From the NCBI GenBank assembly GCA_964199315.1, contig OZ116701.1, positions 33,294,001 to 33,358,000 on the forward strand: a DNA stretch of 64,000 nt, written 5' to 3'. Both the position numbers and the translations under genes were made by a program. Source of the DNA: Orbicella franksi (taxonomy: Eukaryota). How positions within the stretch are numbered: position 1 is the first letter of the stretch; each line of letters starts with the position of its first letter. The notes beneath the pieces are model-generated. The model did no database searches, was not told the origin of the DNA, and worked only from the letters and a program-made list of their open reading frames with translations. Of the stretch, positions 1,181-61,683 are shown piece after piece.

Positions 1181-2849
1181 GAGATTTAGTGTAAATGTTA
1201 CCTACCACTGGTTCTAAGGCACCTGGCATGCACTCAAGTTTTGCTATATCCAGTAATTTTATCCCGTATTCTTTGTTTAACAACTGCTACACGGAGTTAA
1301 AGATTAAAATACACATTTTTTTTTAATTTCTGGTTCATCAGTTACCGAGATTACTCTGTTTTGTGCCAACCACTCAATCAATGAGTTCTTGTACTTGCTG
1401 AGTTCTGTGGTTTGCAGCTGCGATGTCAAGTCATTTACTTCACGTCTGACCATAACACTTGAGTTTTCCAAATGTGTAATATCCTTCTTCGTTTGAGCCA
1501 TCAAAGTCTCCCAGTCTGATTTGTGTCACAGGCAGAGCAGACTTATCTGTCAATAAACCGCTGTCCTCATACCAACCACTACCAATGTTATCACAATTAC
1601 ACTTTGTACCACCAGTACAAGAGTTTGTTACTCCGCATGCGCACATCCTGTCATGACCTGTAGCTCCTCCCCAGTGGTCCATCTGTGTTCCATCACGTGA
1701 CACCCACCAAGCATAACTTGACTCAATAAACATTATTTCATTATTGCACTCAAACTTGATAAACTGTTCGCAGTTCTGGGAGACTTGTGTGAGTGCTGCT
1801 AGCTGAGCGGTGCTGACTCCAGTGTATCGCACATCTTTACTGTAACATCCTCGACCACTACATCCATAAGGACCAACATGTGTGCTACTCTCACTGTCGT
1901 GATTGATAACCGTCATGCCAACTCCGTCCTTATTACTCATGTCACAGTAGACACTGAAGGGAGTCACGCCTCCGTTGCCATCAGGGTCAATCACATAATT
2001 ACCTGAAGGTATTTCCTTATTGCTTGATTTTATTTCACTGCACGAGATTGGCTTACGAACCTCTAGAGAAGTGCTTGCTTTAACGGAACGATGGAAATTT
2101 CTCGCTATGCAGGTATAGGATCCAGCGTAATTTGGTGAAATGTTCTTAAGAAGCAGAGATCCGTTTGGATAAAGGATACGATTGGTTGGAAGACTTTGGC
2201 CTACACGTTGCCAAACAATTTCTCGTGTTCCTTGCGCGGAGCAGGGAAGTAACACATCTCCAGAGGTTAATCCTAAGGATGTACGAGGAGGAAGTAAAGT
2301 AAACTTGAGGGCCTCAAGCACAATGACTTGTAATAAAGCTGAATCCTGATTGAGAAGATTCTTTGCCAAACATATATAATCTCCTCCTTGACTTTTCGTC
2401 ACTTTTACCAGGCTGAGTTTTCCTCCCTCGACATTGGTTATTGTCTTTTTTGGTGTGTTGTGATATAGAAGAGCCAACTTTCTCCACGTGACCGTTGGTG
2501 TCGGCTGACCAGTAGCTTGGCAGACCAGGCTCACGTTCCGTCCTTCCTCAACGATGACAGAGGAGGGCTTAAGGGAAATCAAGGCGCCAACTAGATAACA
2601 ACAGAAAAAGTGTCAAGCATGAGGTATAAGTGGAGAGAAAAATTACATCATAGACTAATAGCGATGCAGTGAATGGACCTTTGGCATATTAGTCTTCAGT
2701 TGAATTACATTATGGTTTCAATACAAGTTCATGTTGGGCATATGTGTCTTCGTCTAGATTTCTAGTTGCTTTTGAAATCAAAACTTTCTCTGGTAACGTT
2801 AAAAAGAAATAAAGCATGAGCTCTAGGTTAGTAGTCTGTAGCCTTTTAT

Positions 2850-3140
2850 TTATACATTCACGCACACCAGCATCGTTTATAAAATAACTGAGCTGCTACG
2901 CGCGCTCTCATTGGTCGATAGGTGTGTTTAGATAAGAGTGTGTAAACACGGTTGTGACGTTTTTATAGATTGGCGCGTATTTGAGAATTATTTTATAAAA
3001 GACATAGAACCCTTTTTCCATGTTTACATAGCCTCAACTAAACACTTGGGGGATTGGGAGAATTCTCGAAAGTTATGCAAACCCGAGACGAGGCTTTCTC
3101 GAGTTCTCCCAGCTCTTCTCGTAAAATGTTAAACTCCTGG
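2850..3140. repeat. Interspersed repeat in intron 2, shared by both gene copies (second copy about 9850-10140)
   Basis: Near-identical sequence in both introns (ataaaataactgagctgctacgcgcgctctcattggtcgatagg...), with gggagaattctcga / ctcgagttctccc inverted motifs. Resembles common coral repeats. Confidence 0.6.
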
Positions 3141-4208
3141 TTTAGCCTAAGAAAGTCTTAACTTAAAATGTAACAATATACTGTTTTGTATACCATTTTT
3201 GACAGAGAACATAAGGTGTACCACTTTCTCATACGTGCGATAGGCACACTTTATCCCTTTCCTATACCCTTGCATTGCGTAGCCCCTTTAAATCCCCCTG
3301 GTGACTTTGCAACTGACGTTACATGCGTTTATTTGGTGCAAATTGAAAGGGCCTCCTTGGTAATACCGAAATAGTTTTTCCCTCCCTTCTCTAAACCATT
3401 GGGCTGGTAAAATCTCTACCCTTTTATATATCTCCAGTCTTTTAAGACGGAGCCTGGCCAGTTGTAATAGTACCCGCCTTCCTTTCGGCGAATTTCTAAA
3501 CTTCGCTTGTAAATTTCTTATATAACAGGGTAATTTTTTTTATTTCACCTTGAACAGTTAAAGTGGCCGATGAGGTCATTTCTCCAAGAATATTTCATGC
3601 TACACAAGAGTACATTCCTTCATCTTGTGACTTCACATCAGTTATCATCAGTCCACCACGTGACGACACAACTCGTTTATCCGCGGCAAGACTGGAATTC
3701 TGTTTCAGCCATGTGACTTTAGGTTGTGGGTTTCCTTCAGCTTCACACTGAAACGAGGCTGTACCGGATTCATTTACCATCATGGACATCGGAGGTGCCA
3801 CAATTGAAGGGGCTGAGATAGATTTGCCTGAATCGCCCTTAGGTCCCTGAGGGCCTTCCGGTCCTGGAGGTCCCTGGATTCCTTGGGGTCCTTGATTTCC
3901 TTTAGTTCCCTGAGGTCCAGAAGGTCCGGGTGGTCCATGTTTACCTGGAGAGCCTCTGGGACCAGGCCTGCCTCGTCTTCCCCTGATGCCTTTGGGTCAA
4001 TGCACTGTACATGCATGGTTACTTAGAGCAAGTTGCACTAGTTTTGTAATGTCGGCACGATCAATGATTTCGCTGCCGTTGGGTTTCTTGTTTCCAGTTT
4101 CCACGTGCCGTTTGTAACGAATGTGCAACTCTGCAAGAAACACAGCAGGAACATTTTACTTAGATATAATTTTCAAAAGGCTCTTAAAAGTGTCAAATAT
4201 TCGCTGGT

Positions 4209-4246
4209 AATCTGAACGTTTCGGGCTTAGCCCTTCTTCAGTAGGT
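4209..4246 (-). ncRNA. Degenerate Penelope-type hammerhead ribozyme motif in intron 1 (second copy at 11219-11255)
   Basis: Minus strand reads CTGAAGA-A-GGGC-TAA-GCCC-GAAACGTT: core boxes, a perfect 4-bp stem II and a palindromic ACGT stem III. Stem I is mismatched. Confidence 0.55.
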
Positions 4247-4529
4247 AAAATGATTGAGCCGCGCCATACAAAAAACTGTACGTGTACGCACGCACGGAAA
4301 CCGCGCGCACCAAGTACAAAGTAAAAAAAGGCGCGCTGCGAAATGTTTATTTCTTCACTGTTCAGATTTTTGAACACTTCCAATAAAAAGATTACAATAT
4401 TCCACCGCTTTTTCCAACAAATGTTTTGTCTTTTTGACGGAAACAGAGAGATTTCAACTTGCTATTCCCCTTGCCTGGAAAGTAAACATGTACATTGCTC
4501 CTTGTCGCTTTCGCGCTGCCAACCGACCG

Positions 4530-4652
4530 ACTAGCTTTTGAGTCCTAACGATGTATTTTTAATAATTTTAGATTTTAGTTTTTAGGTATATATTTTATGG
4601 CAGGTCCACACCAGCCCTCTGGGTTGCCAGACACAGACCTGCCTCATCAAAA

Positions 4653-4685
<33 letters not shown>

Positions 4686-4688
4686 TGT
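4530..4688 (+). mobile_element. 5'-truncated retroposon 3' end with (TATG)n tail, copy 1 intron only
   Basis: Absent at the matching site in copy 2 (accgaccgcatgaatt, about 11531-11546). Ends in about 8 TATG units at 4656-4688. Confidence 0.65.
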
Positions 4689-4711
4689 ACCGCATGAATT
4701 TCCGGAAAAAT

Positions 4712-4827
4712 TAACCTGCGATCAGGCGTTCTTTTTTCCCCTTCGCCCGCTCGCCACAAAACAAAAAAACAAACAAACACACAAACAACAACAAACAAAT
4801 AAATAAAGGACGCCTGATCGCAGGTTA
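4712..4827. mobile_element. MITE with 18-bp TIRs (second copy at 11558-11670)
   Basis: taacctgcgatcaggcgt at 4712-4729 and acgcctgatcgcaggtta at 4810-4827 are exact reverse complements around an A-rich interior. Confidence 0.85.
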
Positions 4828-5504
4828 GTATAATTATACGTAAATGTATTCAAGACTCCCAATTACATCGTCTGTTTTGAGCTGCGTCAAACACGAAATT
4901 TGGCGTTTAAAAACCGGTACGGCATCTAAGGGTGATTACCTCGTACGATCGATAGAAAGGTAATTATAAATTAACTTTCATATATAGTAAACAAGTTTAC
5001 CTAAATGGTACAAAATGCTGCTGAAGGGAAGGAGGATGTGAAATGTTAGTATGATGTTGAACGCTCTAACTTTCACAGTCTCTCAGAAAGGTCACTGAAA
5101 AATACCTCAGCCAGTCTGTTCTTGAAAAGCAGGAACAATTTCGTCGTAATTTCGCTGATCTCTCCACAGTCTTCTGTAGGCTAACCTCACGTGTCAAGCA
5201 AAAATGTTTCTTAAAATACATACACTGTTTTTAATGATTTTCTCGTATCAAAATATTTGACGAAACATTATAACATAATGAGCTCAAGCCTTCTAAGATA
5301 CGCCTTCAGACAACACGGCACGAGTTCCCGTAATGTTTAGTTTAGCCGATCGGAAGTTACACGATTTATTGATGCTGAATCATTTTTCTTATCTTTTTCT
5401 GGTGGACGTACATTCCTTCTTTTCGGTGTTTTGAGGGAAAGGGAGGAGCATATGGTTTATATGCAATATGGTAATTTTTTGACCAGTTGTCACAAACTTG
5501 GCAT

Positions 5505-6650
5505 TATTTCATACTTACTGAGATTTTCGCATAGAATCGATCGCGTGAAAAACTCATGCGGAAATTTCTTCATCCAATCACAATCGCGAGATGACTTTCT
5601 CACACGTGGGAAAAGCGTTTCATCCAATCAGAAATCAGCTATCAAAATGAATCGGACAGTTCACAACGCGCTCACGTTGTTGTTGGCGCCTCGTCAATCT
5701 TCATTCACGGAAGTTCTGTAGAGTTTCCACAAGTTTACTCCAGTTTTCTCGCAAATTAGCTTTATAAACCACAGACAATGGCGGAAAGTTCGAACAGGTT
5801 TATCGCTTTAAATAAACCCATTAAAAAGTACATCCGGGAACAGTAGAACAAAAGGACTCAAGCAAAAACCCGACGAGACGTTAAAGTTAGCTTGCTTAGA
5901 GAATTCCTCAAACAAAAGGAAGAGGCAAGAAAAGTTTAAAAAAAAGCAAATATGCCGTAAGCATTATCGACGACAAAGAGTTTTAACAAGCAAGGAAATG
6001 TCTGGAAGCTTGAAGCAAGCGACTTAAAAAAAGGCAAGGCAAGGGAAACAAATCAAACGCAGCTGAAGCGTTGACTGATGACCAGGTTAACATTCTGTAC
6101 GAAAAATATTTACACTAGGTTTTTGAAGAAGCGACAAAGTGCTTGCACTCAGACGGAATAAAAAAATAACTTGACATTTGCTCTGCCGAATGAAGGGTGA
6201 AAATCTCAGTAAGTATAAAATAAACAAATGACAGCATGGAAGGTGCTTTGTACGGTATTTACGCACTCGTTGTTTTTGTATCAGAAAGGTAAGGTAAGGT
6301 AAAGTCTGCATGCGAGCCAAGTGGCCCATCAGGCCGGAGCTTATCCCGGTTTCTGTAGCATGAAGCGACTAGGAGTATTTCTATTCCTCCCTGGATGGGA
6401 TGCTAGTCCATCGCAGGGTTACCCCCAGCATTAAGTTCGCCGGTACTCATTTATACACCTGGGTGGAGAGAGGCACTGTGAGAGTAAAGTGTCTTGCCCA
6501 AGAACAAAACACAATGTCCCCGGCCAGGACTTGAACCCGGACCGCACGTTCCGGAGACGAGCGCACTAACCATGAGGCCACCGCACCTCCCGTATCAGAA
6601 AACTCGTGCGTAAATACCGTACGCGCGCACTTTCCATGAAGTAAGCTATA
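5505..6650 (+). mobile_element. Decayed, internally deleted Crypton-like (DUF3504 tyrosine recombinase) element, copy 1 intron 1 only
   Basis: About 1.15 kb absent from copy 2. From ATG 5778 it reads MAESSNRFIALNKPIKKYIREQ*NKRTQAKTRRDVKVSLLREFLKQKEEARKV*, and from about 5948 KYAVSIIDDKEF*QARKCLEA*SKRLKKRQGKGNKSNAAEALTDDQVNILYEK. Both resemble CryptonA/DUF3504 proteins (recall, not a search). Confidence 0.65.
6288..6591 (-). mobile_element. Full-length tRNA-derived SINE with 10-bp target site duplication
   Basis: Minus-strand head GGGAGGTGCGGTGGCCTCATGGTTAG (A box) ...GGGTTCAAGTCC (B box). Central cttgggcaagacactttactctcacagtgcctctctccacccagg domain and (TTACC)n tail. TSD gtatcagaaa at 6278-6287 and 6592-6601. 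Confidence 0.9.
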
Positions 6651-8442
6651 TTTTTAATATCGTGCACACGTTCTGAATGGACATCAGATGTCGATTGGGT
6701 TGATCATGTTTCAACTTTTTTCGTTTTAGCTGTCGCTTCTTCAGGGCAAACGAATTTCCTCGTTTAACTGTTTCTCAATGATTTTAGTACTCACCTTTGT
6801 TAGACTCACTGTGTGACATTTTCATCACGGATTCTTTGTCTTCGAGTGTTGTGTTTCGGTGCCCAAGCTTTTCTTCTTTTTTTTGATTCAAGACTTGAAG
6901 CATTTGTCGATGAACGTGAAGTTCCACCTCCACGTGAATCAATCCCGAAAGACAAATCACAGACCGAAATATCGATGAAAAGGCCACTGTGCTCGAGACT
7001 GGGTGAGTCTTTGTTTTCTGCATAATTCCGTCCTTCGAGGCTTTCAGAATTACCCAGTGGATGAAGGTATCTGATATACAGAAAGTGAGACTTGCGCCTT
7101 CAAGATCAAAGGTAGACAAAAACACGATGGCTTTTATGACACTGGGGCTAATCCTTGTCTGACCTTAAGTTCCGGTTTCAGCTTACGGCATTGGATCAGT
7201 TTCAATTTTAATTTTTATGGTAATGTTTGATTTTTATATTTTGGATGGCGTGTCGGGTGGGCGAGGAAGAGGTATTACGACATATGGAATCGTTCAGGTT
7301 TTTGTTGTGAAAATACAATGTAGAAATGTAGATATTTCTTAGTGGCCTAATTTTGGTTATGATTTTTATTACGCAGAAAATCCCGAGAAATTAAAAGCAC
7401 TCTCTGCACAGAGAAAAGGGCTTATATATTGTCATCTTTAAATTTTGATGTGTGACGAGGAAATGGTTCATAATTCTTGCGCGAATTACTTCAACAACAG
7501 CGATGGAATACAGGATTTTCTCTCAATAGAGAGACTTGTTTGTAAATTTTATCTGTTTTGTATCATTCCCACTTAGCGATCTTTCTTCTCTTACGAGCGC
7601 TCGGCGTGTTTGAAGGAAGAAAGTACTAACCTGCTAAAGATAGCCCCTGTACAATTATAACTTTTGTGCTTTTGAAAAACTTTATTTCGCGCCATGTTTG
7701 AGCCCGTGTGGTGAAATGCAAATAATTGTTTAACAAAAGGCCATATACGTATTCTCGGTATTGGACTGGAGCTAGCTTGCGACTGAGGCTAACAGGGGAG
7801 TCTTTTAAATGCAAATGATATTCTCTTTTTAGTGATATTTTCCCGCATGAGCCTTCATTGCAAGCTATCTAGTTCCCACATTAATCTGAAATAACCTTTG
7901 GTCGCAAACGTGACAGTGCTGACAAATATCTTTTTGACCCTAGTGCATTGTGGGGGCCTATAATGACTGAGTGCAATTGGCAAGCATAAAGATTTTTTTT
8001 CATGATAACATCGATCACACAGAAGTGTTCCCATCATCCACAAACGGTCCAATTTCTTCTCTAACCTTACTTTGGAATTTGCAGAAAAATTCTTTTATTT
8101 AGTTTAGAGATTTGTAAAATGTTTGTCTGAAAGCGTTTTTAACTACGATTGACTTTTTTTTCTGCCATTAATTCTAAGATACATGCCACTCAAGTTTTTG
8201 TTATATCAGGTATTTCTAACGGTCTATTTTCTGCTCAAATGCTGCTTATTGGAGTAAAAAGTTTTCAATACAAGCTATTTACTTTTGGTTCATCAGTTGT
8301 TACTGCTGAGATTACGTTTGTCAGTCACCAAAGTATATAATAACTGAGGAATACATGACCAAAAGGCAATCCGATAATTTCTAATCATACTTGCAGAATT
8401 CTGTTAGCTTTATATAGCAGCTGTGAAGTCAAGTAATTAACT

Positions 8443-11400
8443 TCATGCCTGACCATAACACTTGAGTTTTCCTAATGTATGATATCCTTCTTCGTGTGAA
8501 TCATTCAAGTCTCCCAGTCTGATTTGTGTCACAGGCAGAGTAGACTTGTCCGTCAACAGACCGCTGTCCTCATACCAACCAGTACCGCTGTTATCACAGT
8601 TACACTTCTTGCCACCGGAACAAGAGTTTGTTACTCCGCATGCGCACATCTTGTCATGACCCGTAGCTCCTCCCCAGTAGTTCATCCTTGTTCCATCACG
8701 TGACACCCACCAAGCAAAACTCAACTCAATAAACGCTACATCATTATTACACTCAAACTTGATAAACTGTTCACAGTTCTGTGAGACTTGTGTGAGTGCT
8801 GCTAGCTGAGGGGTGCTGACTCCAGTGTATCGCACATCTTTACTGTAACATCCTTGGCTACCACATCCATTAGGACCAACATGGGTTCTACTCTCACTGT
8901 CGTGGCTGATGACCGTCACGCCAACTCCGCCCTTGTCACTCATGTCACAGTACACACTGAAGGGAGTCACGCCTCCGTTGCCATCAGGGTCAATCATATA
9001 ATTACCTGAAGGTATTTCCTTATTGCTTGATTTTATTTCACTGCACGAGATTGGCTTACGAACCTCTAGAGAAGTGCTTGCTTTAATGGAACGATGGAAA
9101 TTTCTCGCTATGCAGGTATAGGATCCAGCGTAATTTGGTGAAATGTTCTTAAGAAGCAGAGATCCGTTTGGATAAAGGATGCGATTGGTTGGAAGACTTT
9201 GGCCTGCACGTTGCCAAATAATTTCTCGTGCTCCTTGCGCTGAACAAGGAAGTAACGCATCTCTAGAGGTTAATCCTAAGGATGTACGAGGAGGAAGTAA
9301 AGTAAACTTGAGGGCCTCAAGCACAATGACTTGTACTAAAGCTGAATCCTGATTGAGAAGATTCTTTGCCAAGCATATATAATCTCCTCCTTGACTTTTC
9401 GTCACTTTCATCAGGCTGAGTTTTCCTCCCTCGACATTGGTTAATGTCTTTTTAGGTGTGTCATAGTTATATAGAAGAGACAGCTTACTCCACGTGACCG
9501 TTGGTGTTGGCTGACCAGTAGCTTGGCAGACCAGGCTTACGTTCTGTCCTTCTTCAACGATGACAGAGGAGGGCTTGCGGGAAATCAAGGCGCCAACTAG
9601 ATAACAACGGAAAAAGTGTGAACCATGAAGCATAACTGGAAAGAAACATTAAAATAGACTAATAGCGACGCAGTAAATGGACCTTTGGCATGTTAGTTTT
9701 CAGTTGAATTACATTATGTTTTCAATACAAGTTCATGTTGGGCATATGTATCTTCGTTTAGATTTCTAGTTGCTTTTGAAATCAAAGCTTTCTCCGGTTA
9801 TATTAAAAAGAAATAAACCATGAGCTTTAGACTAGTAGTCCGTAGCCTTTTATTCATACATTCACGCACACCAGCATCGTTTATAAAATAACTGAGCTGC
9901 TACGCGCGCTCTCATTGGTCGATAGGTGTGTTTAGATAAGAGTGTGTAAACACGGTTGTGACGTTTTTATAGATTCGCGCGTATTTGAGAATTATTTTAT
10001 AAAAGAAATAGAACCCTTTTTCCATGTTTACATAGCCTCAACTAAACACTTGGGGGATTGGGAGAATTCTCGAAAGTTATGCAAACCCGAGACGAGGCTT
10101 TCTCGAGTTCTCCCAGCCCTTCTCGTAAAATGTTAAACTCCTGGTTTAGCCTAAGAAAGTCTTAACTTAAAATGTAACAATATACTGTTTTGTATACCAT
10201 TTTTGACAGAGAACATAAGGTGTACCACTTTCTCATACGTGCGATAGGCACACTTTATCCCTTTCCTATACCCTTGCATTGCGTAGCCCCTTTAAATACC
10301 TTTGCAATTGATGACTTTGCAACTGACGTTACACGCATTTGTTTGGTGCAAATTGAAAGGGCCTCCTTGGTAATACCGAAATAGTTTTTCCTTCCCTTCT
10401 CTAAACCATTGGGCTGGTAAAATCTCTACCCTTTTATATATCTCCAGTCTTTTAAGACGGAGCCTGGCCAGTTGTAATAGTACCCGCCTTCCTTTCGGCG
10501 AATTCTAAACTTCGCATGTAAATTTCTTATATAACAGGGTAATTTTTTTTATTTCACCTTGAACAGTTAAAGTGGCCGATGAGGTCATTTCTCCAAGAAT
10601 ATTTCTTGCTACACAAGTGTACATTCCTTTATCTTGTGACGTCACATCTGTTATCATCAGTCCACCACGTGACGACACAACTCGTTTATCCGCGGCAAGA
10701 CTGGAATTCTGTTTCAGCCATGTGACTTTAGGTTGTGGGTTTCCTTCAGCTTCACACTGAAACGAGGCTGTACCGGATTCATTTACCATCATGGACATCG
10801 GAGGTGCCACAATTGAAGGGGCTGAGATAGATTTGCCTGGATTGCCCTTAGGTCCCTGAGGGCCTTCCGGTCCTGGAGGTCCCTGGATTCCTTGGGGTCC
10901 TTGATTCCCTTTAGTTCCCTGGGTTCCCGCAGGTCCGGGAGGTCCGTGTTTACCTGGAGAGCCTCTGGGACCAGGCCTGCCTCGTCTTCCCCTGATGCTT
11001 TTGGGGCAATGAACTGTACATGCATGGTTACTCAGAGCAAGTTGTACTATTTTTGTAATGTCGGCACGATCGATGATTTCGCTGCCGTTGGGTTTCTTGT
11101 TTCCAGTTTCCACGTGCCGTTTGTAACGAATGTGCAACTCTGCAACAAACATAGAATAAACATTTTACATAGATATAAGTTTCAAAAGGCTCTTAAAAGT
11201 GTCAAATATTCGCTGGTAATCTGAACGTTTCGGGCTTAGCCCTTCTTCAGTAGGTACAATGATTGAGCCGCGCCATACAAAAAACTGTACGCGTACGCAC
11301 ACACGGAAACCGCGCGCACCAAGTACAAAGTAAAAAAAGGCGCGCTGCGAAATGTTTATTCCTTCACTGTTCAGATTTTTGAACACTTCCAATAAAAAGA

Positions 11401-12712
11401 TTACAATATTCCACCGCTTTTTCCAACAAATGTTTTGTCTTTTTGACGGAAACAGAGACATTTCAACTTGCTATTCCCCTTGCCTGGAAAGTAGACATGT
11501 ACATTGCTCCTCGTCGCTTTCGCGCCGCCGACCGACCGCATGAATTTCCGGAAAAATTAACCTGCGATCAGGCGTTTTTTTTTTCCCCCTTCCCCCGTTC
11601 GGCGGAAAACAAACAAGCAAACAAACAAACAAAAAAAACAAATAAATAAAGGACGCCTGATCGCAGGTTAGTATAATTATACGTAAATGTATTCAAGACT
11701 CCCAATTACATCGTCTGTTTTGAGCTGCGTCAAACACGAAATTTGGCGTTTAAAAACCGGTACGGCATCTAGGGGTGATTACCTCGTACGATCGATAGAA
11801 AGGTAATTATAAATTAACTTCCATATATAGTAAACAAGTTTACCTAAATGGTACAAAATGCTGCCGAAGGGAAGAAGGATGTGAAATGTTAGTATGATGT
11901 TGAACGCTCTAACTTTCACAGTCTGAGAAAGGTCACCGAAAAATGCCTCAGCCAGTCTGTTCCTGGGAAGCAGGAACAATTTCGTCGTAATTTCACTGAT
12001 CTCTCCACAGTCTTCTGTAGGCTAACCTCGCGTGTCGAGCAAAAATGTTGCTTAAAATACATACACTGTTTTTAATGACTTTCTTGTATCAAACGACTAA
12101 ACGTTATAACATAATGAGCTCAAGCCTTCTGAGATACGGCTTCAGACAACACGGCACGGGCTCTCGTAATATTTAGTTTAGCCGATCGGAAGTTACACGA
12201 TTCATTGATGCTGAATCATTTATCTTATCTTTTTCTGGTAGACGTACATTCCTTGTTTTCGGTGTTTTGAGGGGAAGGAAAGAGCATATGGTTTATATGT
12301 AATAACGTAATTTCTTGACCAGTTGTCAGAAACTTTGCATTTTATATCGTGTACAAGTTCTGAATGGACATCAGATGTCGACCGGGTGGGATCATGTTTC
12401 AGCTTTCTTCGTTTAAGCTGTAGCTTCTTCAGGGCAAACGAATTCCCTCGTTTAACTGTTTTCTCAATGATTTTAGTACTCACCTTTGTTAGGCTCACTG
12501 TGTGACATTTTCATCACAGATTCTTTGTCTTCGTGTGCCGTGTTTCTTAACTCGAGCTTTTCTTCTCTTTGCTGATTCAAGACTTGAAGCATTTGTCGAT
12601 GGACGTGAAGTTCCATCTCGACGTGAATCAATCCCGAAAGGCAAATAACAGACAGAAATATCGATGAAAACACCACCGTGCTCGAGACTGGGTGAGTCTT
12701 TGTTTTCTCCAT
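8443..12712 (-). CDS. Type II membrane protein: TM/coiled coil, furin site, collagen, 3 Ig domains, Caspr/fibrinogen-like domain (cnidarian ficolin-like architecture), 654 aa
   Basis: Exons 12712-12484, 11139-10558 and 9596-8443, GT-AG and phase 1, total 1965 nt with no stops. Hydrophobic [21 protein letters not shown], 18 Gly-X-Y triplets, three Ig-type C...W...Y-x-C domains, then SCSEIK...GNYMIDPDG...VYCDM...CEQFIKFEC...WWVSRDG...WGGA...CACG...CNCD...KLKCYG as in contactin-associated/neurexin IV fibrinogen-like domains. Confidence 0.9.
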
Positions 12713-13084
12713 AATTCCGTTCTTCGAGGCTTTCAGAATTACCCAGTGGATGATTGTATCTGATACATAGAAAGTGAGACATGCGCCGACAAGATCAAAG
12801 CTCGACAAAAACACGATGCATGCTATGACACCGGGGCTAATCCTTGTCTGACCTTCAGTTCCGGTTTCAGCTTACGACATTGGATCAGTTTCAATTTTAA
12901 TTTTTCTGGTAATGTTTTATTTTCCTAGATGGTGAGTGGGGTAGGTGAGGAAGTTGTATTAAGACATGCCATCAGTTGATGTTTCTGTTGAGATAACACA
13001 ATGTAGAAATGTAGATATTTCCTAGTGGCCTTATTTTGGTTATTAGTTTCATTGCGCGGGAAAACGCGAGAACTTAAAAGCACT

Positions 13085-17003: not shown

Positions 17004-17156
17004 TGATTGGTTCACGATGAAAAATGGTACACCACCGTATCAATTACTGTGCTTGGTTAACAGTATATCATGAATACTGACAACAAATTAAGAGCGCCGC
17101 TAACATAGACGACAGTCAGTCAGCTCCGGTCGTGTACTGTAGAATCGGTGGTATAA
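17004..17156 (+). promoter_or_regulatory. Putative FoxG core promoter (inverted CCAAT and TATA)
   Basis: ctgattgg at about 17004-17011 and TATAAA at 17151-17156, about 75 nt before the ATG at 17231. Motif match only. Confidence 0.4.
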
Positions 17157-17230
17157 ACGCACAGATCGACCGTCGACTGCAAGAATTCTGTACAGAGCTT
17201 GGTACAAGAACCAATTCAAGCCACATTAAA

Positions 17231-18492
17231 ATGAAAGATAACAGTGATCAAGATTATCAAGAGCTGTGTTCTAAAGAAGCGCTGAACAGCTCGGAGGAAA
17301 AGATTTTCAAACACCAAGATGGCAAAGCAGCAGCAAGTCCTGCGAAGGATGGTGAAGAAGACAAAGAAGCCGGGCATGTGAAGGAAGATGGGCCAATGGC
17401 GAAGAATGAAGGCAAAGATGGGGAAGAGAAAAAATGCGAGAAGCCGCCATTTTCGTATAATGCCCTCATAATGATGGCAATTCGTGGGTCGCCCGAGAAG
17501 AGACTAACCCTAAGTGGTATCTATGATTTCATAATGAAGGTTGGTACACTTGATTCATCTTAAGCACCTACAACTAACATTAATCAATTTTTCTCGCCGT
17601 AATTGTTGGATTCGTTAACGCGCACCGTGGTATTTATCTCTTAGAGCCTTCAATTGAAATCAAAATCAAAACGAAAGCTTAAAATTTGAAACCTAAACGG
17701 TTCTACTTATGATTCTTTATACAGAATTTTCCCTACTACTGTAACAACAAGCAAGGCTGGCAGAACTCCATTAGACACAACCTATCACTGAACAAATGCT
17801 TCGTCAAGATTCCCCGTCATTATGACGACCCTGGGAAAGGGAACTATTGGATGTTGGATCCCAGTGCTGACGATGTGGTTATCGGCGGAACGACAGGCAA
17901 ACTAAAACGACGAAATCCGCCTTCCTCTAGAAACCGCGTGGCGCTGAAACGCCAGCAAAGAATCTCTCCAGTACCAGGCTATGCACTTGACCCTTCACAA
18001 GTAGGCTTCTACTCTGGTTTCTGGCCTCATCCACCCTCTATGTTCCCGGCACCTTTGTCGCCTCAAATGAGAAGACACAGCTTAGTGGGAATGTCTTGCA
18101 CCATGAACTGCAGCTCGTCCCTCCCACATCCAACACCGGTTCTTCCACACCCAACCCCCAGTGCCAGATGCCTCGTCCCCTCATCACCAGAGATGGCCTT
18201 CCCAAGTCATTGCCACGGGTTTGGATTTCTGCAGCCCTCTTGCCCACAAACAGGCCTTTTCTCTCTCGGCCACCCACGCTCCCCACTGGAATCACAATGG
18301 CCAACTTCGATGCCATCATCTCCATTTCTACAAGACAGGTTTATGGTGAACAATGATTCGATATTTCAGTCTGCGTTCAGTACAGTACCTAAGCTAACGT
18401 TCGGTACTCCCACATTAAGATCTAACTTCCCTTTCTTAAAAGAGAGCGCTTCCCAAGTTTCGCGCACGCGTTTTCTTTCGGATTGCAAATGA
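17231..18492 (+). CDS. FoxG: Forkhead box G transcription factor, 358 aa, two exons
   Basis: Exons 17231-17539 and 17725-18492, phase-0 GT-AG intron. The joined domain [33 protein letters not shown]|[63 protein letters not shown] carries the FoxG-diagnostic [10 protein letters not shown] and IGGTTGKL motifs. Confidence 0.95.
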
Positions 18493-35211: not shown

Positions 35212-36126
35212 ATGCCTCTACAACCACTCTGGGAATCCCATGAAATGTACCAGAGGTCATTTCAGGCATTAATCGACAACTCAACGGCCAGAGGACCAGC
35301 TATCCTTAACTTTACACAAGACGGGATAAGGCAGGCCATGCTGAAAATTATTAACAAGATGAACATCGACGAGCCACTTAAAGTGTTGGGCATTGGGAGT
35401 GGAAGCGGAGAGAATAATCTCCTCATTCTTCAAACTATGGCGGATATCCTCGTATCACAGAAGAAGAAAAGACCTGCTATCCATAACGTGATCGTTGAGC
35501 CGAGCTCGGTTATCTTAGATCAATTCAAAATGAAGGCTTCTTCGCTGCCGTCATCATTAAAGAGCGTAGCCAATGTTTCCTTCGAATCGCAGCAGAAAAC
35601 GTTCAGTGAATTCAACCAAGAAACCTCCATCGAAAAGAAAAGTTTCGATTTTATTCATTTTGTCCACAGTATCCGTTACTCGGATCTGGAGCTTGCGCTG
35701 CGATCATGCTTCGAACAATGGCTAAAAGCTGAACACGGAGTCGTGGTTTGCTATGTTCATACCGAGAATTCATACCTTGCTAAAGTCAGTAAGAAGTTTA
35801 AAGGAAAATTGAGCTGTGGCTCGGAAGTTATGGCCTTCTACACGCATGAAGAGCTGGCTGCCATTGCGGAGAAAAACAGCTGGAATTATTGTGTCCCGCT
35901 AAAGGAAAAATATCAGATCAATGTGACGGCCTGCCTACTAAAGCAAACGTCAGCCGAGTCCGATCCGCTTATCGATTTCCTAAGTCATCAACAAAATTTC
36001 CGAGCAAATGCCGAGCAAGAATTGTTTAACAGTTGGATGGAGATGACCGAATCCTTGGCTTTCACGGACGACAACGATGAAAAGTTTGTTGCAGGGGAAA
36101 ATGCAGTAGTTATAATCAATAAGTAG
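35212..36126 (+). CDS. Histamine N-methyltransferase-like class I SAM-dependent methyltransferase, single coding exon, 304 aa
   Basis: Motif I KVLGIGSGSGE, VIVEPS and FDFIHFVHS parallel HNMT (ILSIGGGAGEID, VVEPS, DFIHMIQM). Orthology not established. Confidence 0.8.
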   Translation: MPLQPLWESHEMYQRSFQALIDNSTARGPAILNFTQDGIRQAMLKIINKMNIDEPLKVLGIGSGSGENNLLILQTMADILVSQKKKRPAIHNVIVEPSSVILDQFKMKASSLPSSLKSVANVSFESQQKTFSEFNQETSIEKKSFDFIHFVHSIRYSDLELALRSCFEQWLKAEHGVVVCYVHTENSYLAKVSKKFKGKLSCGSEVMAFYTHEELAAIAEKNSWNYCVPLKEKYQINVTACLLKQTSAESDPLIDFLSHQQNFRANAEQELFNSWMEMTESLAFTDDNDEKFVAGENAVVIINK

Positions 36127-42500: not shown

Positions 42501-44313
42501 TTTCATTGACCAACAGCTTGGTTTGAGGATTTACAGAAACTTACGTGCATTTCGTTCCGAGGCTTGTTGTATAGATTAGTCAAATATATAACATATGAGC
42601 ATAAAAGTAACAAAATATTTCAAATAAATAAAGTCCTTCGTAGTCGAACAGCTGGCAAAGGATATGCGCAAACTGTTTGCTTTGGGACGCTTGGGCCAGT
42701 TGGACGTTAACGGTATTAAACAACTTCAATTATAAATCTCAGTTGCTTTGATTGCTTTTTGCTCGCTGGCGGTGACAAATTTGGCTCACTGGCAGATGTC
42801 GAGTTTTCTCTCGTGTGGCTCGCAGGCCGATAGTTTGCAACAGTTGTCGTTTGTTTTAGCTTAGCTTTGATTGAATTCAGTTTAAAGAGGTTTCTTTGAT
42901 TGCTTTATGCCCGCTGGCGTTGTCTAGATTTGGCACGCTGGCCGAATTTGGCACACTGGCCGAGTTTGGCATGGTGGCCGAGTACTCTTTTGGCTCGCTG
43001 GCCGATTGTTGAGCTTGCTAGCTCGATAAATATACCACAGTGGCACTTAACTAAAGTACACTCACGTAGAATTGGGAATAAAAACAAATAAAACTTACAA
43101 AAGCAGGTGAAAATTACGTTTTTCTTTCCTCAAACTTGATCAAAACTCCGCTCAATGAATGGCAAAGCTGCTGAGAATCGACGATCACAACCATGCGGGC
43201 TTGACGTCACAATCTCTGCGCGCTACGATTGGTCCGTTGTAAGACAATCGACCTTTTCCACTACGTCATTGGAATCTCAGGAATCTTGCCTTACAACATA
43301 GTAGAGGGGAATGGTTATAAACATGTCTCTCGATCACTCGAGATTTTTTCCGCCTGCACAGTACTTTCGCACGGCTCTATAATGCTGCCGCCTCGCCAGC
43401 CTCGCGTCTTCGCTCGGCTGGCTCGTTGGCAATAATAGACAAAAGACAATAAAAGGGGACGTGCGAGCATCTTTGCGCGAAAGATTTCCATTGCATTAGT
43501 CTAAAAAGATTCTGACAATGTAAGAAAACTAACTCTTACCCATCAATTGCATGGTTTTCTCTTCAACAGCTTGTAGAAAAGTTGACAGTAGCCCCTAAAA
43601 TAAAAATCCAATCAACGCCAAGTGCCGATAAAATGGCTCTGACCGCCGAAGGAGGACTGATGTTGTTGATCAACTTCGCTGCGTTTACAGGGAATTTGCT
43701 GATGTGTTTTATTTTGTACAAGAAGCCAAGTTTCCACACAACTGCAAACACATTCACTCTGTCTTTGACCATTTGTCACGTGTTTACCTCTTGCCTGGTC
43801 ATGCCGTTCACCGCGGGCTCACTGGTGGCGGGAGAGTGGATGTTTGGACAGACTTTGTGCGACATTCAGGGATTCGTGTTCCTCACCTTAACATGGGTGC
43901 CTTTGCAGTTGCTGACAATCATGGTGGCGCGTCGATATTTAAACATCACCCAGTTGTTATCCCACAATAAGTGGTTCTCGCTTAACCGATCCACTGGAAT
44001 GGTTTTGACAATCTGGGTATTCGATGTAGTCGTGCTGATGTTTCTCGCAATACTTGGTGGCACCGCGTTTCAATTTTCTCCAAAACGATCATTGCTCTGC
44101 ACTAGGCCCTTGAGCCGTGAAAACCAAACTGTAAACATATTTAATACAGTGATTACATCGGCCCTTTACATAGCTCTGTTAATTATCTCCATCATGGCAT
44201 TGTGCGCTATCAGAAGACATGAAGCCACCTTTCGGGCTAGGAGAAGAATTACCCCGTTCGACATGAGATCAGCTGCTGAAGCAAAGATAACAGATAAAGT
44301 TTTGTTAGCCCTT
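39540..44313 (+). repeat. Left arm of a large inverted segmental duplication
   Basis: Reverse-complement matches block by block to 47146-50520, e.g. 39541-39600 with 50455-50520, 40260-40370 with 49660-49770, 41650-42030 with 48000-48390, and 43440-44313 with 47146-47980. Confidence 0.9.
42030..43435. mobile_element. About 1.4 kb segment present only in the left arm, probable DNA-transposon-like insertion
   Basis: Absent from the right arm, where the homologues of 42030 and 43435 are adjacent (about 47975-48000). Inverted 11-mer tgccaacgagc at 42054-42064 and gctcgttggca at 43421-43431. Internal 18-bp tandem repeats at 42929-43006. Confidence 0.55.
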
Positions 44314-44559
44314 ACAATGGAAATCCTTCTTATTTGGATGCCTTTTGTAATAATCAAGCTCGTGGAATTTCCAACCCAGCCGGCAGTCATGGCTATTCCA
44401 CGCCAGGCCCATCTGGCTTCCACTTTTCTTTGGTTTGCTGTCGCTGTCCTTCACCCCGTCACATATGGGGCTTTGTACAGACCGTTTTCAAGAGAACTGC
44501 TGAGAATTGTGCCAACTAGATTGCGACAAAATAAGGCACATGCTGAACATGCCATCTGA
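43633..44559 (+). CDS. Class A (rhodopsin-like) GPCR, melatonin-receptor-like cnidarian type with atypical motifs
   Basis: Seven hydrophobic segments, GN in TM1, W.FG...C disulfide motif, IWMP in TM6, HPVTY in TM7. First ATG is 43633. The frame is open from a likely acceptor at 43568-43569 (ttttctcttcaacag, branch-like ctaac at 43529), so an upstream exon may extend the N-terminus. Confidence 0.85.
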   Translation: MALTAEGGLMLLINFAAFTGNLLMCFILYKKPSFHTTANTFTLSLTICHVFTSCLVMPFTAGSLVAGEWMFGQTLCDIQGFVFLTLTWVPLQLLTIMVARRYLNITQLLSHNKWFSLNRSTGMVLTIWVFDVVVLMFLAILGGTAFQFSPKRSLLCTRPLSRENQTVNIFNTVITSALYIALLIISIMALCAIRRHEATFRARRRITPFDMRSAAEAKITDKVLLALTMEILLIWMPFVIIKLVEFPTQPAVMAIPRQAHLASTFLWFAVAVLHPVTYGALYRPFSRELLRIVPTRLRQNKAHAEHAI

Positions 44560-54100: not shown

Positions 54101-55549
54101 ACCAAGAGATTATGATCTAACTGATAAAATTTCTCGTTTGATCGAGGTCGCATAAAACAGGATTTTATTTGTTCTTACTTTGCGGAAATTTCAAAAATAA
54201 CACTGGAATATCAAAACAAAATTGCATCTACTGCGTGTACTTACTTTGAAAAAGTAGCTCGGTTGAATGTGGAATAAGAATAGTAAATGGTGCACCGTCC
54301 CATAAAGGACTCAATAGAAATGGTTTGTCGTGGCCAGGAAGAGCATTTGGTGCTTGATATCTACCTTGCGCATTCCCTGGTAAATAATGGAATATAAAGT
54401 AAAATAAGTTTCGCTGGCAGTCTATAACTAGGAGTGTCCACCTCAGACTTTGCAAGAATCTTTAAAAGACGAGGATCCCCCAATGTATAAGTTATTTGCG
54501 GGGAGACATTTGGTGGGAAAAAATAACTGCATTTCTTATGAGCAAGTATGAAGAAAGGGAAGGAAGTCAATAGGACACTGTTTAAAGTAAGTTGTTAAAA
54601 AGGACTGAATTCATGGAAAACTGTAAGGGATATCATGTACAGTGACTGCACCCTATAATCTAAGGAAGAGTTCAGCGAGGCCGGTTACTGAGTTTCGACG
54701 ACTACTACATGTCGTTTACTAGATAGAAATACTCATTGCGTGTCAGAGGTTGCATACGCGAATCCTGGGTCCCACTGAGTTTAATATTCTACGTAGATAT
54801 ATATGAGGCGTACAATTTGACGCTTCTGAGCGAATTGTTTTTTTTTGTCTGGGTGGAAGGCGGAGCGGGGGGGGGGAGAGTGACTCACGTAATGGGATTG
54901 AGTTAGTCCATTAAATGTATTGCTGTTACTGACCTTTAATAAACCAGTCACGTGGAGGGTCTTTGTAGCCATCACACAGTGAATACTCCAAAACCACTTC
55001 CACGTGGTATTGTCCTGGCTCTAAAACAAGAAAAACGACTTCGTACTTTCCATTACCATGATCAACTACTGTTGGAGACATGGAAGAAGGGCCTCGTACA
55101 TGAACCCGCCAAGAGTCTCCTCCAACCTTCTTGTCCAAATTGTCCCGTGTTACAGACTGTATTTCAAATCGACTAAACTGCCCGGCGGGTCTGATATCCC
55201 ACAATATCAGATAGCTTTTAGCCGCATCTGTCCTGCTTTGGGAACGTTGAAAGCCCTTATTCTTGCCCCATTCCATGTTTTCTGCGCATGGTCGTAAAAC
55301 TTGTTTCCAGTCCATTCGCATTCGCTTTAAGCGACACCATGTCTCGAGAAAGTCCGCGTAACGCGCGTTGTCGCGCGTGTCGTTATTCATTATCCTCGCG
55401 TGTAGCTTCCGTGACGCGATGTGAACTCTGTAATGATGGTGGACCCAGTATAGGTACGCAAAAATACACAATGTTGCAACAGTTACTATTTTCCGAGAGA
55501 TTAGCCTGTTGTTGCATGTCCATGCTGCTAAGGACGTGCGAAAACTCAT
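51127..55549 (-). CDS. NXPE/PC-esterase-like (SGNH-type) type II membrane protein, 5 exons, about 526 aa
   Basis: Exons 55549-54934, 54376-54245, 53710-53597, 52484-51964 and 51324-51127, GT-AG and phase-compatible, total 1581 nt. N-terminal TM, filamin/Ig-like segment (GGDSWRV...VVDHGNGKYEVVF), YGDS Ser motif, NLGLH and DAVH (DxxH). The exon 3 acceptor was chosen by phase. Confidence 0.82.
52700..53050 (+). mobile_element. MITE-family copy in intron 3 of the NXPE-like gene; truncated copy at about 50755-51003
   Basis: The two copies share gaggtac.a.gatcctgttttgtgggcgt ... aaagctcccgctg ... aaaaggtac.acgagcaccc. G-tract and C-tract termini. Confidence 0.7.
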
Positions 55550-59673: not shown

Positions 59674-60795
59674 TTAAAAGTTCACATCTCGACCGTTTAC
59701 AGAGCCCACGCGAGCTTTTGAAAAGGAATGGCGCAACTTTTCAGGACCAAACGGTGGCGACTTCTGAACTACCAGTGGAACAGGCAGAGAACGCGCTGAA
59801 GGCGCATCCGTCTGTACGAGACAGGGCGCGATGAGCTGCATCAAGGTGCTCCTCACTTCTGATATGCGATAGGTGTATACCAATGGATTAATGGCACTGT
59901 TACTGTAATGGAGAAGTTTCACAAAATCCAACAGGTGCAACAGGTTCGTGTCGTGGGGAAGATAACTGGGCCAGAAAATAAACAATACTGACAGCGTGAA
60001 AAATGGAAGCCACGATAACACAAAAAGACCTGTGACTATCAACACGGTTTTAGCGGTTGTCTGTTCATGATGTACCTTCCTCTGAAGTGAACTAATGGAG
60101 TACGAGCGCCGACGAATGTTGAACTGTTTCACGCTCTTGTAAATGTTGGCGTACATGCAGATTATTATCAGAAGCGGCAGGAAAAATCCCGCGATAGCAC
60201 TAAACAGCCCCTTGTACTTCCTCCACATAGCAAATTTGAAATCGCTAGCGAAGATGCCCGCAATTGCAAGGCCGTACGCCCATGTTGCGGCGATGGCGCA
60301 GTAATAGTGATAGCGACGCATAACGCGATGTCTTAGTGGTTTCGAAATAGCAATGTTTCGATCGATACTGATGATTGTAAGGTGTGCAATGGAGGTAAGG
60401 GCGCTGCAAACGTCGAGGAACGTGTACACTTTGCGGAACTGAAGGTTGACAGCGCTCTGCGATGTATGGTTCAAATCATACAGCAATATATACATCCAAC
60501 ACGGGATTGAGATGGCTCCCACGATGAAATCTGAAACTGCTAAACTCACGAAGAACATGTTCGTCGCTGTCCGCAGCTTGCTGTTTCTTGTGAAAACGAT
60601 TATAATAAGAGAGTTCCCGAGGATTACCAAGAATGACAGAAGTGAATAGATTGTTACGAAAATAAGCGTCTCTTGCGCTGAGTGTCTGGGAAAGGTAGCC
60701 ACGGGGCCCGAAGTGGATCTCGTTGGTGAAGTGTCGTTTGTTAGGTTGCATATTCCGCTAGAAGAACTTGAGTTGTTGAAAACCAAGTTTTTCAT
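59674..60795 (-). CDS. Class A GPCR, biogenic-amine/adenosine-receptor-like, single coding exon, 373 aa
   Basis: N-terminal NxS/T sites, GN, TNMFFVSLAVSD, FLDV (D3.32), DRN, SWLPF, NSAINPLVY. The ORF-track start at 60801 is TTG; the first ATG is 60795. A 5'UTR intron acceptor is likely at about 60862. Confidence 0.9.
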   Translation of the reverse strand: MKNLVFNNSSSSSGICNLTNDTSPTRSTSGPVATFPRHSAQETLIFVTIYSLLSFLVILGNSLIIIVFTRNSKLRTATNMFFVSLAVSDFIVGAISIPCWMYILLYDLNHTSQSAVNLQFRKVYTFLDVCSALTSIAHLTIISIDRNIAISKPLRHRVMRRYHYYCAIAATWAYGLAIAGIFASDFKFAMWRKYKGLFSAIAGFFLPLLIIICMYANIYKSVKQFNIRRRSYSISSLQRKVHHEQTTAKTVLIVTGLFVLSWLPFFTLSVLFIFWPSYLPHDTNLLHLLDFVKLLHYSNSAINPLVYTYRISEVRSTLMQLIAPCLVQTDAPSARSLPVPLVVQKSPPFGPEKLRHSFSKARVGSVNGRDVNF

Positions 60796-61683
60796 TTTCA
60801 AAGGTTGATGCGTCTTCTTTTAGTTCTTCACAAACCAGCCTCTTTAACAGAACTGCGACCGCTGAAAATGAAATTAAATATACTTAATTTGCACAGCTTT
60901 TAGAAGGACCTTAAGATGTGGCAAATAATTAATTGTTCATATGTGTTTATACGTCACTCGCCTTGTCACATAGTTAATAGGGATTTGGGAAATTAAGGCA
61001 TTTGGTCATATTGGCTTCGAGACATGTAGACGTTTGACTGGTTGAAATTTGATTAAAAAAACTCAACAATCCATACCCAAAAACTCCTTTTGCTGCGACA
61101 ATTTATTTCTTTTCTCCGCGTTGGGAACTTTAAGACAAGAAATGAAAAAATATCTATATATATCTGATCATAATCCATGCGGAATTGAAATTCGTTTAAG
61201 AGATCATACATGATGCGTGGGTACATTAGCTCCCTTTTCTCTCCAGCCAGACGTAAAATTATCTGTCAACCATGGGATAAAGGTGGGCCATTGCTGAGAT
61301 AATTTTCAAGGGTTTGACATAAAATGATCCAAGCATTCAAACAATGAGTTAAAAAAACGAACTTGTCAAACTGCAGGAGAATTGAATCGATTTGGCCAAG
61401 CTGCACCTGCTACTTGTGCATTTCAAAATTGCCCTTCCAGTCCTATTTTGGTTTTTAATATTTGTCGGTCATGTTTGAACCATCTTATTACCAACGTGTG
61501 GTATACTTACTCTTTGTTTCAGCTCGTGCTTAACTGTAATAAGTCCGGAGGGGCAACATCCAATTAAGCAAACATAAAATATGCCTCACGGCTAGATTAG
61601 TTGTCCATAACAACCTTGGTTTAACTGACGAATGCTTTTGACAAGGAGGGAGTTCCATTTGATTTAAAAAAAAAATAAAACAA

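Follow-up and report, generated by a model that had tools for sequence, protein, structure and literature searches.

A transcribed Orbicella franksi gene of the CniFL family with a head that probably belongs to the Caspr/Neurexin-IV type

We examined a 64,000-nucleotide stretch of DNA from the coral Orbicella franksi (GenBank assembly GCA_964199315.1, contig OZ116701.1, positions 33,294,001 to 33,358,000), referred to here as the window, in which all feature coordinates are given. Between positions 8443 and 12,712, the minus strand of the window carries a gene for a protein that combines a hydrophobic N-terminal segment, a furin-type site, a collagen region, three immunoglobulin (Ig) domains and a cysteine-rich C-terminal head. 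We consider it probable, at roughly 0.7, that this locus is an intact, transcribed coral gene of the published cnidarian ficolin-like (CniFL) family, belonging to a subgroup whose head is of the Caspr/Neurexin-IV type and not a ficolin-type fibrinogen-related domain (FReD).

The spliced model joins three minus-strand coding blocks at canonical sites into a 1965-nt frame of 654 codons, encoding 654 amino acids, and both introns are of phase 1 with GT..AG borders. Exon 1 (12484..12712) encodes Met1 to Lys76 together with the first base of codon 77 and ends at the donor AAAG/GTGAGT; it is followed by intron 1 (11140..12483; 1344 nt), which contains a repeat at approximately 11837-11881. Exon 2 (10558..11139; acceptor TTGCAG/, donor CAAG/GTGAAA) covers residues 77-270 and the first base of codon 271, and holds the furin-type site, the cysteine knot, the collagen region and the first Ig domain. 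Intron 2 (9597..10557; 961 nt) is mostly 97-100% identical to that of a neighbouring copy, and exon 3 (8446..9596; acceptor TATCTAG/) runs to a TGA stop codon at 8443..8445, placed from the translation of the open reading frame (ORF).

RNA contigs from two poly(A) runs contained both joints, 9596 to 10558 and 11139 to 12484, exactly as modelled and with minus-strand GT..AG borders. The preliminary description of this DNA had singled out the joining of the exons in transcripts as a point on which its model might fail; since the RNA joints are identical to those of the model, the question is answered in the model's favour. Gene models of homologues in Stylophora, Oculina and JGI data likewise share the residues at the junctions (...NKE-L..RYKR and ...TVQ-VGA...). 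An alternative in-frame acceptor at 9635 (TTTCCAG/), which looks stronger and lies 39 nt upstream, would add 13 residues; it was rejected, as both the RNA contigs and the homologous models use 9596. Within the introns, two stretches (11837-11881 and 9810-10131) showed RNA depth far above that of the exons, with many reads continuing into unrelated sequence; these are probably dispersed repeats that are transcribed elsewhere.

The N-terminal residues 12-31 (12620..12679) form a 20-residue hydrophobic segment, evident from the sequence, with K3, K5 and H7 on its N-terminal side and a mean identity of 77% among homologues. An AlphaFold2 model of exon 1, built on 16 aligned homologues, consists of one continuous helix over residues 11-71, with a predicted local distance difference test (pLDDT) score above 90 to residue 50 and of 85-98 to residue 60. 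This model fits an anchor that runs on into a helical stalk. The putative signal-anchor transmembrane segment of the preliminary description was recovered in this form, its assignment resting on the hydrophobic segment and the predicted helix. The juxtamembrane part (residues 32-71; 12500..12619) forms a helical stalk in the AlphaFold2 model and corresponds to the coiled-coil-like stretch described there.

Downstream of the stalk lies RYKR (residues 81-84; 11117..11128), a furin-type R-x-K-R site conserved among the listed full-length coral homologues (22 of 24) and represented by RRRR in the scyphozoan homologue P0226. Just before the collagen region, CTVHC (residues 117-121; 11006..11020) provides a CxxxC pair, a candidate interchain disulfide knot, which was found in all 24 coral homologues listed that carry the region. 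The collagen triple-helix region itself (residues 127-180; 10829..10990) matches the Pfam Collagen model (PF01391; E 5.1e-11, 42.6 bits) and consists of exactly 18 uninterrupted Gly-X-Y triplets by a regular-expression count (16-22 in homologues); a run of 18 such triplets implies a trimer. RYKR, CxxxC and the 18 triplets were thus all found on the minus strand where they had first been placed, and the elements follow one another in the order of signal anchor, R-x-K/R-R site and collagen. A conserved furin-type site, a cysteine knot and a collagen stalk fit a processed trimer, and CxxxC, the dibasic site and the anchor-stalk helix together fit a putative type II membrane precursor freed by a furin-type convertase.

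The collagen stalk also contains PGKHGP (10940..10957), which is invariant in the 24 coral homologues listed with a collagen region. This stretch is predicted to be MASP-site-like from the motif Pro-Gly-Lys-Xaa-Gly-Pro, whose Xaa is usually aliphatic (PMC2856262), and it leaves room for a possible link to complement through MASP.

The three Ig domains reported earlier were confirmed by Pfam, which gave I-set/Ig_3 matches with E values of 1e-19 to 1e-26. Ig1 (residues 181-270; 10559..10828) is an I-set domain with an I-set E value of 5.8e-22. Ig2 (residues 272-363; 9319..9594), also assigned to the I-set by Pfam, is a variable domain of the family, and Ig3 (residues 364-451; 9055..9318), likewise found by Pfam, is the most variable one.

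The head (residues 452-654; 8446..9054) comprises 203 residues with 12 cysteines, in agreement with the cysteine-rich, fibrinogen-related head first described, and bears the motifs WWVSRDG, YWGGA, CACG, CNCD and LPVTQ. It scored 36.8-38.6 bits against Pfam COLFI (PF01410; cut-off 26.2), with only profile positions 32-148 of 233 aligned, and 17.5-17.8 bits (E 0.003-0.004) against Fibrinogen_C (PF00147), which is below the cut-off of 22 and confined to the first 50 residues. Sequence searches of the PDB returned weak matches, with procollagen C-propeptides first and fibrinogen beta, over subdomain A only, second. There is no dedicated Pfam model for this head domain. A GON domain, hinted at by Atlas, was considered for the head and rejected, as none of the 71 members of the head alignment matched Pfam GON at E ≤ 0.01.

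The head was modelled with AlphaFold2 from the 71-sequence alignment of diverse homologues (mean pLDDT 95.9), and in a Foldseek search of Swiss-Prot the top 24 matches were all Caspr-type fibrinogen-like domains, including those of CNTNAP1-5, Drosophila Neurexin-IV, C. elegans nlr-1, an Acropora EGF/LamG protein and Axotactin. These matches had template modelling (TM) scores of 0.76-0.89, 26-36% identity and a root-mean-square deviation of 1.8-3.8 Å over approximately 205 residues. Fibrillar collagens came second in the ranking (TM 0.62-0.68; 16-19% identity), and no ficolin was present among the top 30 Swiss-Prot structural matches. In the PDB, COLFI trimers reached TM scores of about 0.6, and fibrinogen, FGL1, angiopoietin and MFAP4 remained at or below 0.30 over 110-140 columns, ficolin and fibrinogen domains matching the first subdomain only. 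The preliminary view that the head is of the Caspr/neurexin IV subtype and not a ficolin head is therefore upheld by scores of 0.76-0.89 against at most 0.30 for FReDs, a class assignment that rests on the ranking of structural matches. In the model, the ligand-binding site of ficolins, which is the sugar site of the P subdomain, has no counterpart.

Heads of this type are a widespread metazoan module, with matches to 2448 clusters (50% identity) at E ≤ 0.001. Their partners include Xlink-CUB-SRCR in sharks, sturgeons and frogs; in amphioxus and in further proteins of the set, the head is combined with Sushi/EGF, coiled coils and C-type lectin domains, and a nemertean and a starfish have long proteins with several copies of the head. 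The shark, sturgeon and frog Xlink-CUB-SRCR protein, automatically named "versican core protein-like", ends in two head copies, and these heads (P0122-P0124, P0127, P0131, P0132, P0177 and P0196) are 45-51% identical to the coral head, closer than any Caspr.

Membership of the CniFL family (Baumgarten et al. 2015, as cited in PMC5094078; van der Burg et al. 2016) was assessed against the definition in PMC5094078, PMC4840205 and bioRxiv 644732. There, a CniFL combines Collagen, Ig (CL0011) and Fibrinogen_C, and most members have one transmembrane domain (TMD) and three Ig domains (PMC5094078). The coral protein has the collagen repeat, the three Ig domains, the hydrophobic N-terminal transmembrane segment and a likeness to published members, and the statement of the preliminary description that a CniFL architecture was already known is borne out by the TMD, collagen and three Ig domains described in the same source. 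In the published alignment (Additional file 5 of PMC5094078), five members (Adi_CniFL1, Ap_CniFL1-3 and Cp_CniFL3) have a head of the form SDKGG/TDKGG...WWVSRDG, with CNCD in Acropora, and the other 23 have the canonical FReD signature DGGY...KYRL..CA..GAWW. The motifs of our head, CNCD included, are common to the five, as judged by eye and without scoring on this trimmed 132-residue alignment. With five published CniFLs bearing a WWVSRDG head, the gene belongs to a described family and is not of a new kind, and the earlier suggestion of a possibly poorly characterised subfamily is not supported.

The published WWVSRDG-type CniFLs were accepted on weak Fibrinogen_C matches of the kind reported above. 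The presence of two head types within CniFL is not stated in the literature that could be searched; a search joining contactin-associated protein, fibrinogen-like domain and cnidarian returned nothing, and one joining COLFI and coral returned nothing relevant. Automatic pipelines have already met the Caspr similarity, as cluster names include "Contactin-associated protein-like 2", and other homologues have been automatically named peroxidasin-like, roundabout-like, brother of CDO-like and contactin-5-like. These genes could be given a consistent name in genome annotation.

Searches with exon 3 as a query recovered 2927 homologue clusters at 90% identity, and given this number the elements of the gene can be taken not to be a chance combination. 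Among the top 120 matches, 15 were models on a single chromosome of Oculina patagonica. Full-length relatives are 583-658 residues long with the same layout, and for the 24 coral homologues listed the mean pairwise identity was 0.86 for collagen, 0.82 for the head, 0.81 for Ig1, 0.67 for Ig2 and 0.60 for Ig3. The layout extends beyond corals: P0226, from the scyphozoan Sanderia malayensis, has the anchor, RRRR, 22 Gly-X-Y triplets, three Ig domains and the head in the same order, without CxxxC. The shared order in this homologue indicates that the architecture predates the anthozoan-medusozoan split.

Within the window, a tandem paralogue lies at 1446..7023 on the minus strand (exon 1 at about 6796-7023, exon 2 at 3550-4131 and exon 3 at 1446-2591), with tblastn identities of 86, 94 and 88% for the three exons. 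Its exon 2 contains two in-frame stops, one taking the place of the second cysteine of CxxxC, the other lying in Ig1 (CVA*N), and an arginine falls within the hydrophobic anchor; exon 3 is still open. Because of the two stops, this copy is probably a young pseudogene. When the region 8200-13000 was aligned with 1200-7300, identity was 97-100% over approximately 9850-11900 (intron 2, part of exon 2 and intron 1) but fell to 87-91% where the head is encoded and to 89-92% near exon 1, and the second copy had about 1.3 kb of extra sequence in intron 1. Such a mosaic suggests gene conversion between tandem copies. No further CniFL copies were found at 13-64 kb of the window, which, with none beyond about 12.8 kb, therefore lies at the edge of the array.

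The evolution of the copies was followed in ten exon 3 sequences, taken from the window and from four tandem arrays in other assemblies, where 2-3 copies occur per 21 kb. Nei-Gojobori ratios of nonsynonymous to synonymous divergence (dN/dS) were approximately 0.30 for Ig2, 0.31 for Ig3 and, with no pair above 1, 0.40 for the head; on account of recombination, site models are unsafe for these copies. Synonymous divergence was flat in the head (0.18-0.32 for all pairs) and spread from 0.05 to 1.6 in Ig2 and Ig3. The Ig and head trees were discordant in approximately unbiased (AU) tests, each data set rejecting the tree of the other: p 6e-39 for the Ig data and p 0.04 for the head data. The heads evolve mosaically among the tandem copies. 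In the arrays of the other assemblies, reverse-transcriptase (RVT_1) ORFs were seen between CniFL copies (L001 8714-9649 and L002 12032-12505).

Elsewhere in the window, ORFs with Pfam matches lie at 17132-18492, 35212-36126 and 43582-44559 on the plus strand and at 54926-55549 and 59674-60801 on the minus strand, and represent a partial Forkhead, Methyltransf_23, two rhodopsin-family seven-transmembrane receptors and a filamin repeat.

The data show how the gene is built, that it is expressed, which domains it encodes, to which family it belongs and how its parts are conserved. From the conserved anatomy of the protein, we infer its membrane topology, trimerisation, cleavage, class of ligand and any role in immunity or in the symbiont or cell-cell recognition suggested in the preliminary description. 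The chain would enter the membrane through the N-terminal signal anchor, prolonged as the helical stalk; three chains would then assemble and be locked by the cysteines of CxxxC and by the 18-triplet collagen helix. A furin-type convertase may cut after RYKR84 and release a soluble trimer with arms of Ig1-Ig2-Ig3-head. The collagen stalk, Ig1 and the head would act as a conserved scaffold, with Ig2 and Ig3 as the diversified part that may tune specificity. As the head has no ficolin-type sugar-binding subdomain, an acetylated sugar would be a less likely ligand than a protein or some other structure at a surface, and the invariant PGKHGP of the stalk could give room for the docking of a MASP-like protease.

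On a broader scale, we tentatively propose that the WWVSRDG-head CniFLs are not ficolin analogues but a separate, cnidarian-wide family (Anthozoa and Scyphozoa) of furin-processed membrane collagens with a Caspr-type tip, expanded in robust corals into large tandem arrays, where gene conversion reshuffles heads that are conserved with Ig2-Ig3 cassettes that diverge; we think this possible, and would not yet bet on it. If true, their candidate role is to recognise protein ligands, for instance in telling self from non-self or in discriminating symbionts, and not lectin-complement activation.

Several observations weigh against our reading of the gene and its product. Exon reads were close to zero in two poly(A) RNA-seq runs carrying the same species label, of each of which 12-25% was read. 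A cleaved signal peptide followed by a furin-removed propeptide would fit the N-terminal region equally well and would give the same mature product. The hydrophobic periodicity of the stalk spans only about three heptads, so that a coiled coil stays a suggestion. In PGKHGP, Xaa is histidine and not an aliphatic residue; PGKxGP is absent from the scyphozoan P0226, and PGKHGP was not seen in the published actiniarian and Acropora CniFL sequences, as represented in the trimmed alignment. Finally, dN/dS exceeded 1 in none of the 45 pairs for Ig2 and Ig3, so that diversifying selection is unsupported at pairwise resolution.

In the literature, CniFLs are cited both for a part in the uptake of symbionts and as the candidate receptors of the lectin pathway in corals and sea anemones. 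The hypothesis put forward there is that they are true ficolin analogues: secreted lectins with a head for glycans of microbes or symbionts and a collagen stalk through which MASP and C3 of the coral are activated. The succession of N-terminal cysteines, collagen and a fibrinogen-related head does parallel ficolins, and cnidarians possess the MASP, C3 and Factor B that such a pathway would use, CniFLs having been proposed as its receptors. For the present gene we nevertheless judge this unlikely, given that the head is not a ficolin-type FReD, whether by the subthreshold Fibrinogen_C match of 17.5 bits over its first 50 residues or by the low TM scores of FReD structures (≤0.30 over 110-140 columns), and that its nearest relatives are domains of adhesion molecules. 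Caspr-type adhesion domains are not known to have lectin activity. The histidine of PGKHGP also speaks against a typical MASP site. If the stony-coral-expanded subgroup of CniFLs indeed bears a Caspr-type head without the ficolin sugar-binding subdomain, the label "ficolin-like lectin" misleads, and searches for ligands should include proteins; the conserved PGKHGP would offer a direct test of the MASP link.

A second alternative is that the protein is a membrane collagen or an adhesion or matrix protein, MACIT- or Caspr-like, which shapes tissues or mediates contact between cells and plays no part in recognising non-self. A type II anchor followed by a furin site and collagen is the layout of collagens XIII/XVII/XXIII/XXV and of ectodysplasin, both I-set Ig domains and heads of the Caspr type are usual in adhesion proteins, and purifying selection acts throughout (omega 0.3-0.4). 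We find this doubtful as well, since numerous paralogues stand in large tandem arrays, and pseudogenes are frequent among them, as is mosaic exchange; these features are more usual in recognition than in structural families. The same arrays, together with the low conservation of Ig2 and Ig3, the conflict between Ig and head trees (AU p 6e-39) and gene-conversion-like mosaics between neighbours, could be taken to mean that the gene is a single unit in a polymorphic array for allorecognition or symbiont specificity, whose specificity cassettes would be Ig2-Ig3. This appears quite improbable to us, as omega is about 0.3 in both domains, with 0 of the 45 pairs above 1, and the variation seen is that between paralogues.

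Compared with known systems, the protein combines features of several. With ficolins (FCN1-3) and collectins it shares an N-terminal cysteine region, a collagen stalk and a globular head, and the stalk bears a motif like Pro-Gly-Lys-Xaa-Gly-Pro, with histidine as Xaa in the coral; the coral head, however, is not a PF00147 FReD, and the coral protein is anchored in the membrane, has Ig domains as spacers and carries a furin site. Molluscan FREPs likewise place Ig domains upstream of a fibrinogen-related head and form a multigene family with gene-conversion-like mosaicism, but unlike the coral gene they have canonical FReD heads and lack collagen and an anchor. Type II membrane collagens and colmedins (collagens XIII/XVII/XXIII/XXV, gliomedin and ectodysplasin-A) are similar in the order of anchor, helix, furin-type site and collagen; the C-terminal module differs, being olfactomedin in colmedins, TNF in ectodysplasin-A and none in MACITs. 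Pfam gave no olfactomedin match in the coral protein. Colmedins, by contrast, terminate in olfactomedin and are not known to contain Ig domains, so the equation of the transmembrane-furin-collagen-Ig order with the gliomedin/colmedin layout in the preliminary description was inaccurate.

The C-propeptide of fibrillar procollagens (COLFI; PDB 4AE2 and 5K31) resembles the coral head in its Pfam score above gathering, a TM score of about 0.6 and a position C-terminal to collagen, and differs in that only the N-terminal half of the profile aligns, identity is 16-19%, and three Ig domains separate the collagen from the coral head. Caspr proteins (CNTNAP1-5), Neurexin-IV and nlr-1 share the fold of the head and a clear sequence homology, restricted to this domain. 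They are type I neuronal adhesion receptors of discoidin, LamG and EGF modules, with the domain in mid-chain and without collagen, Ig or a furin site, whereas Pfam found only Collagen, Ig and COLFI/Fibrinogen_C in the coral protein, with no discoidin, LamG or EGF. The closest likeness in overall architecture is to the CniFLs, which have the TMD, collagen, three Ig domains and a C-terminal fibrinogen-related domain in common with the present gene; beyond this shared plan, the coral clade of the gene has an invariant PGKHGP and has expanded strongly in tandem.

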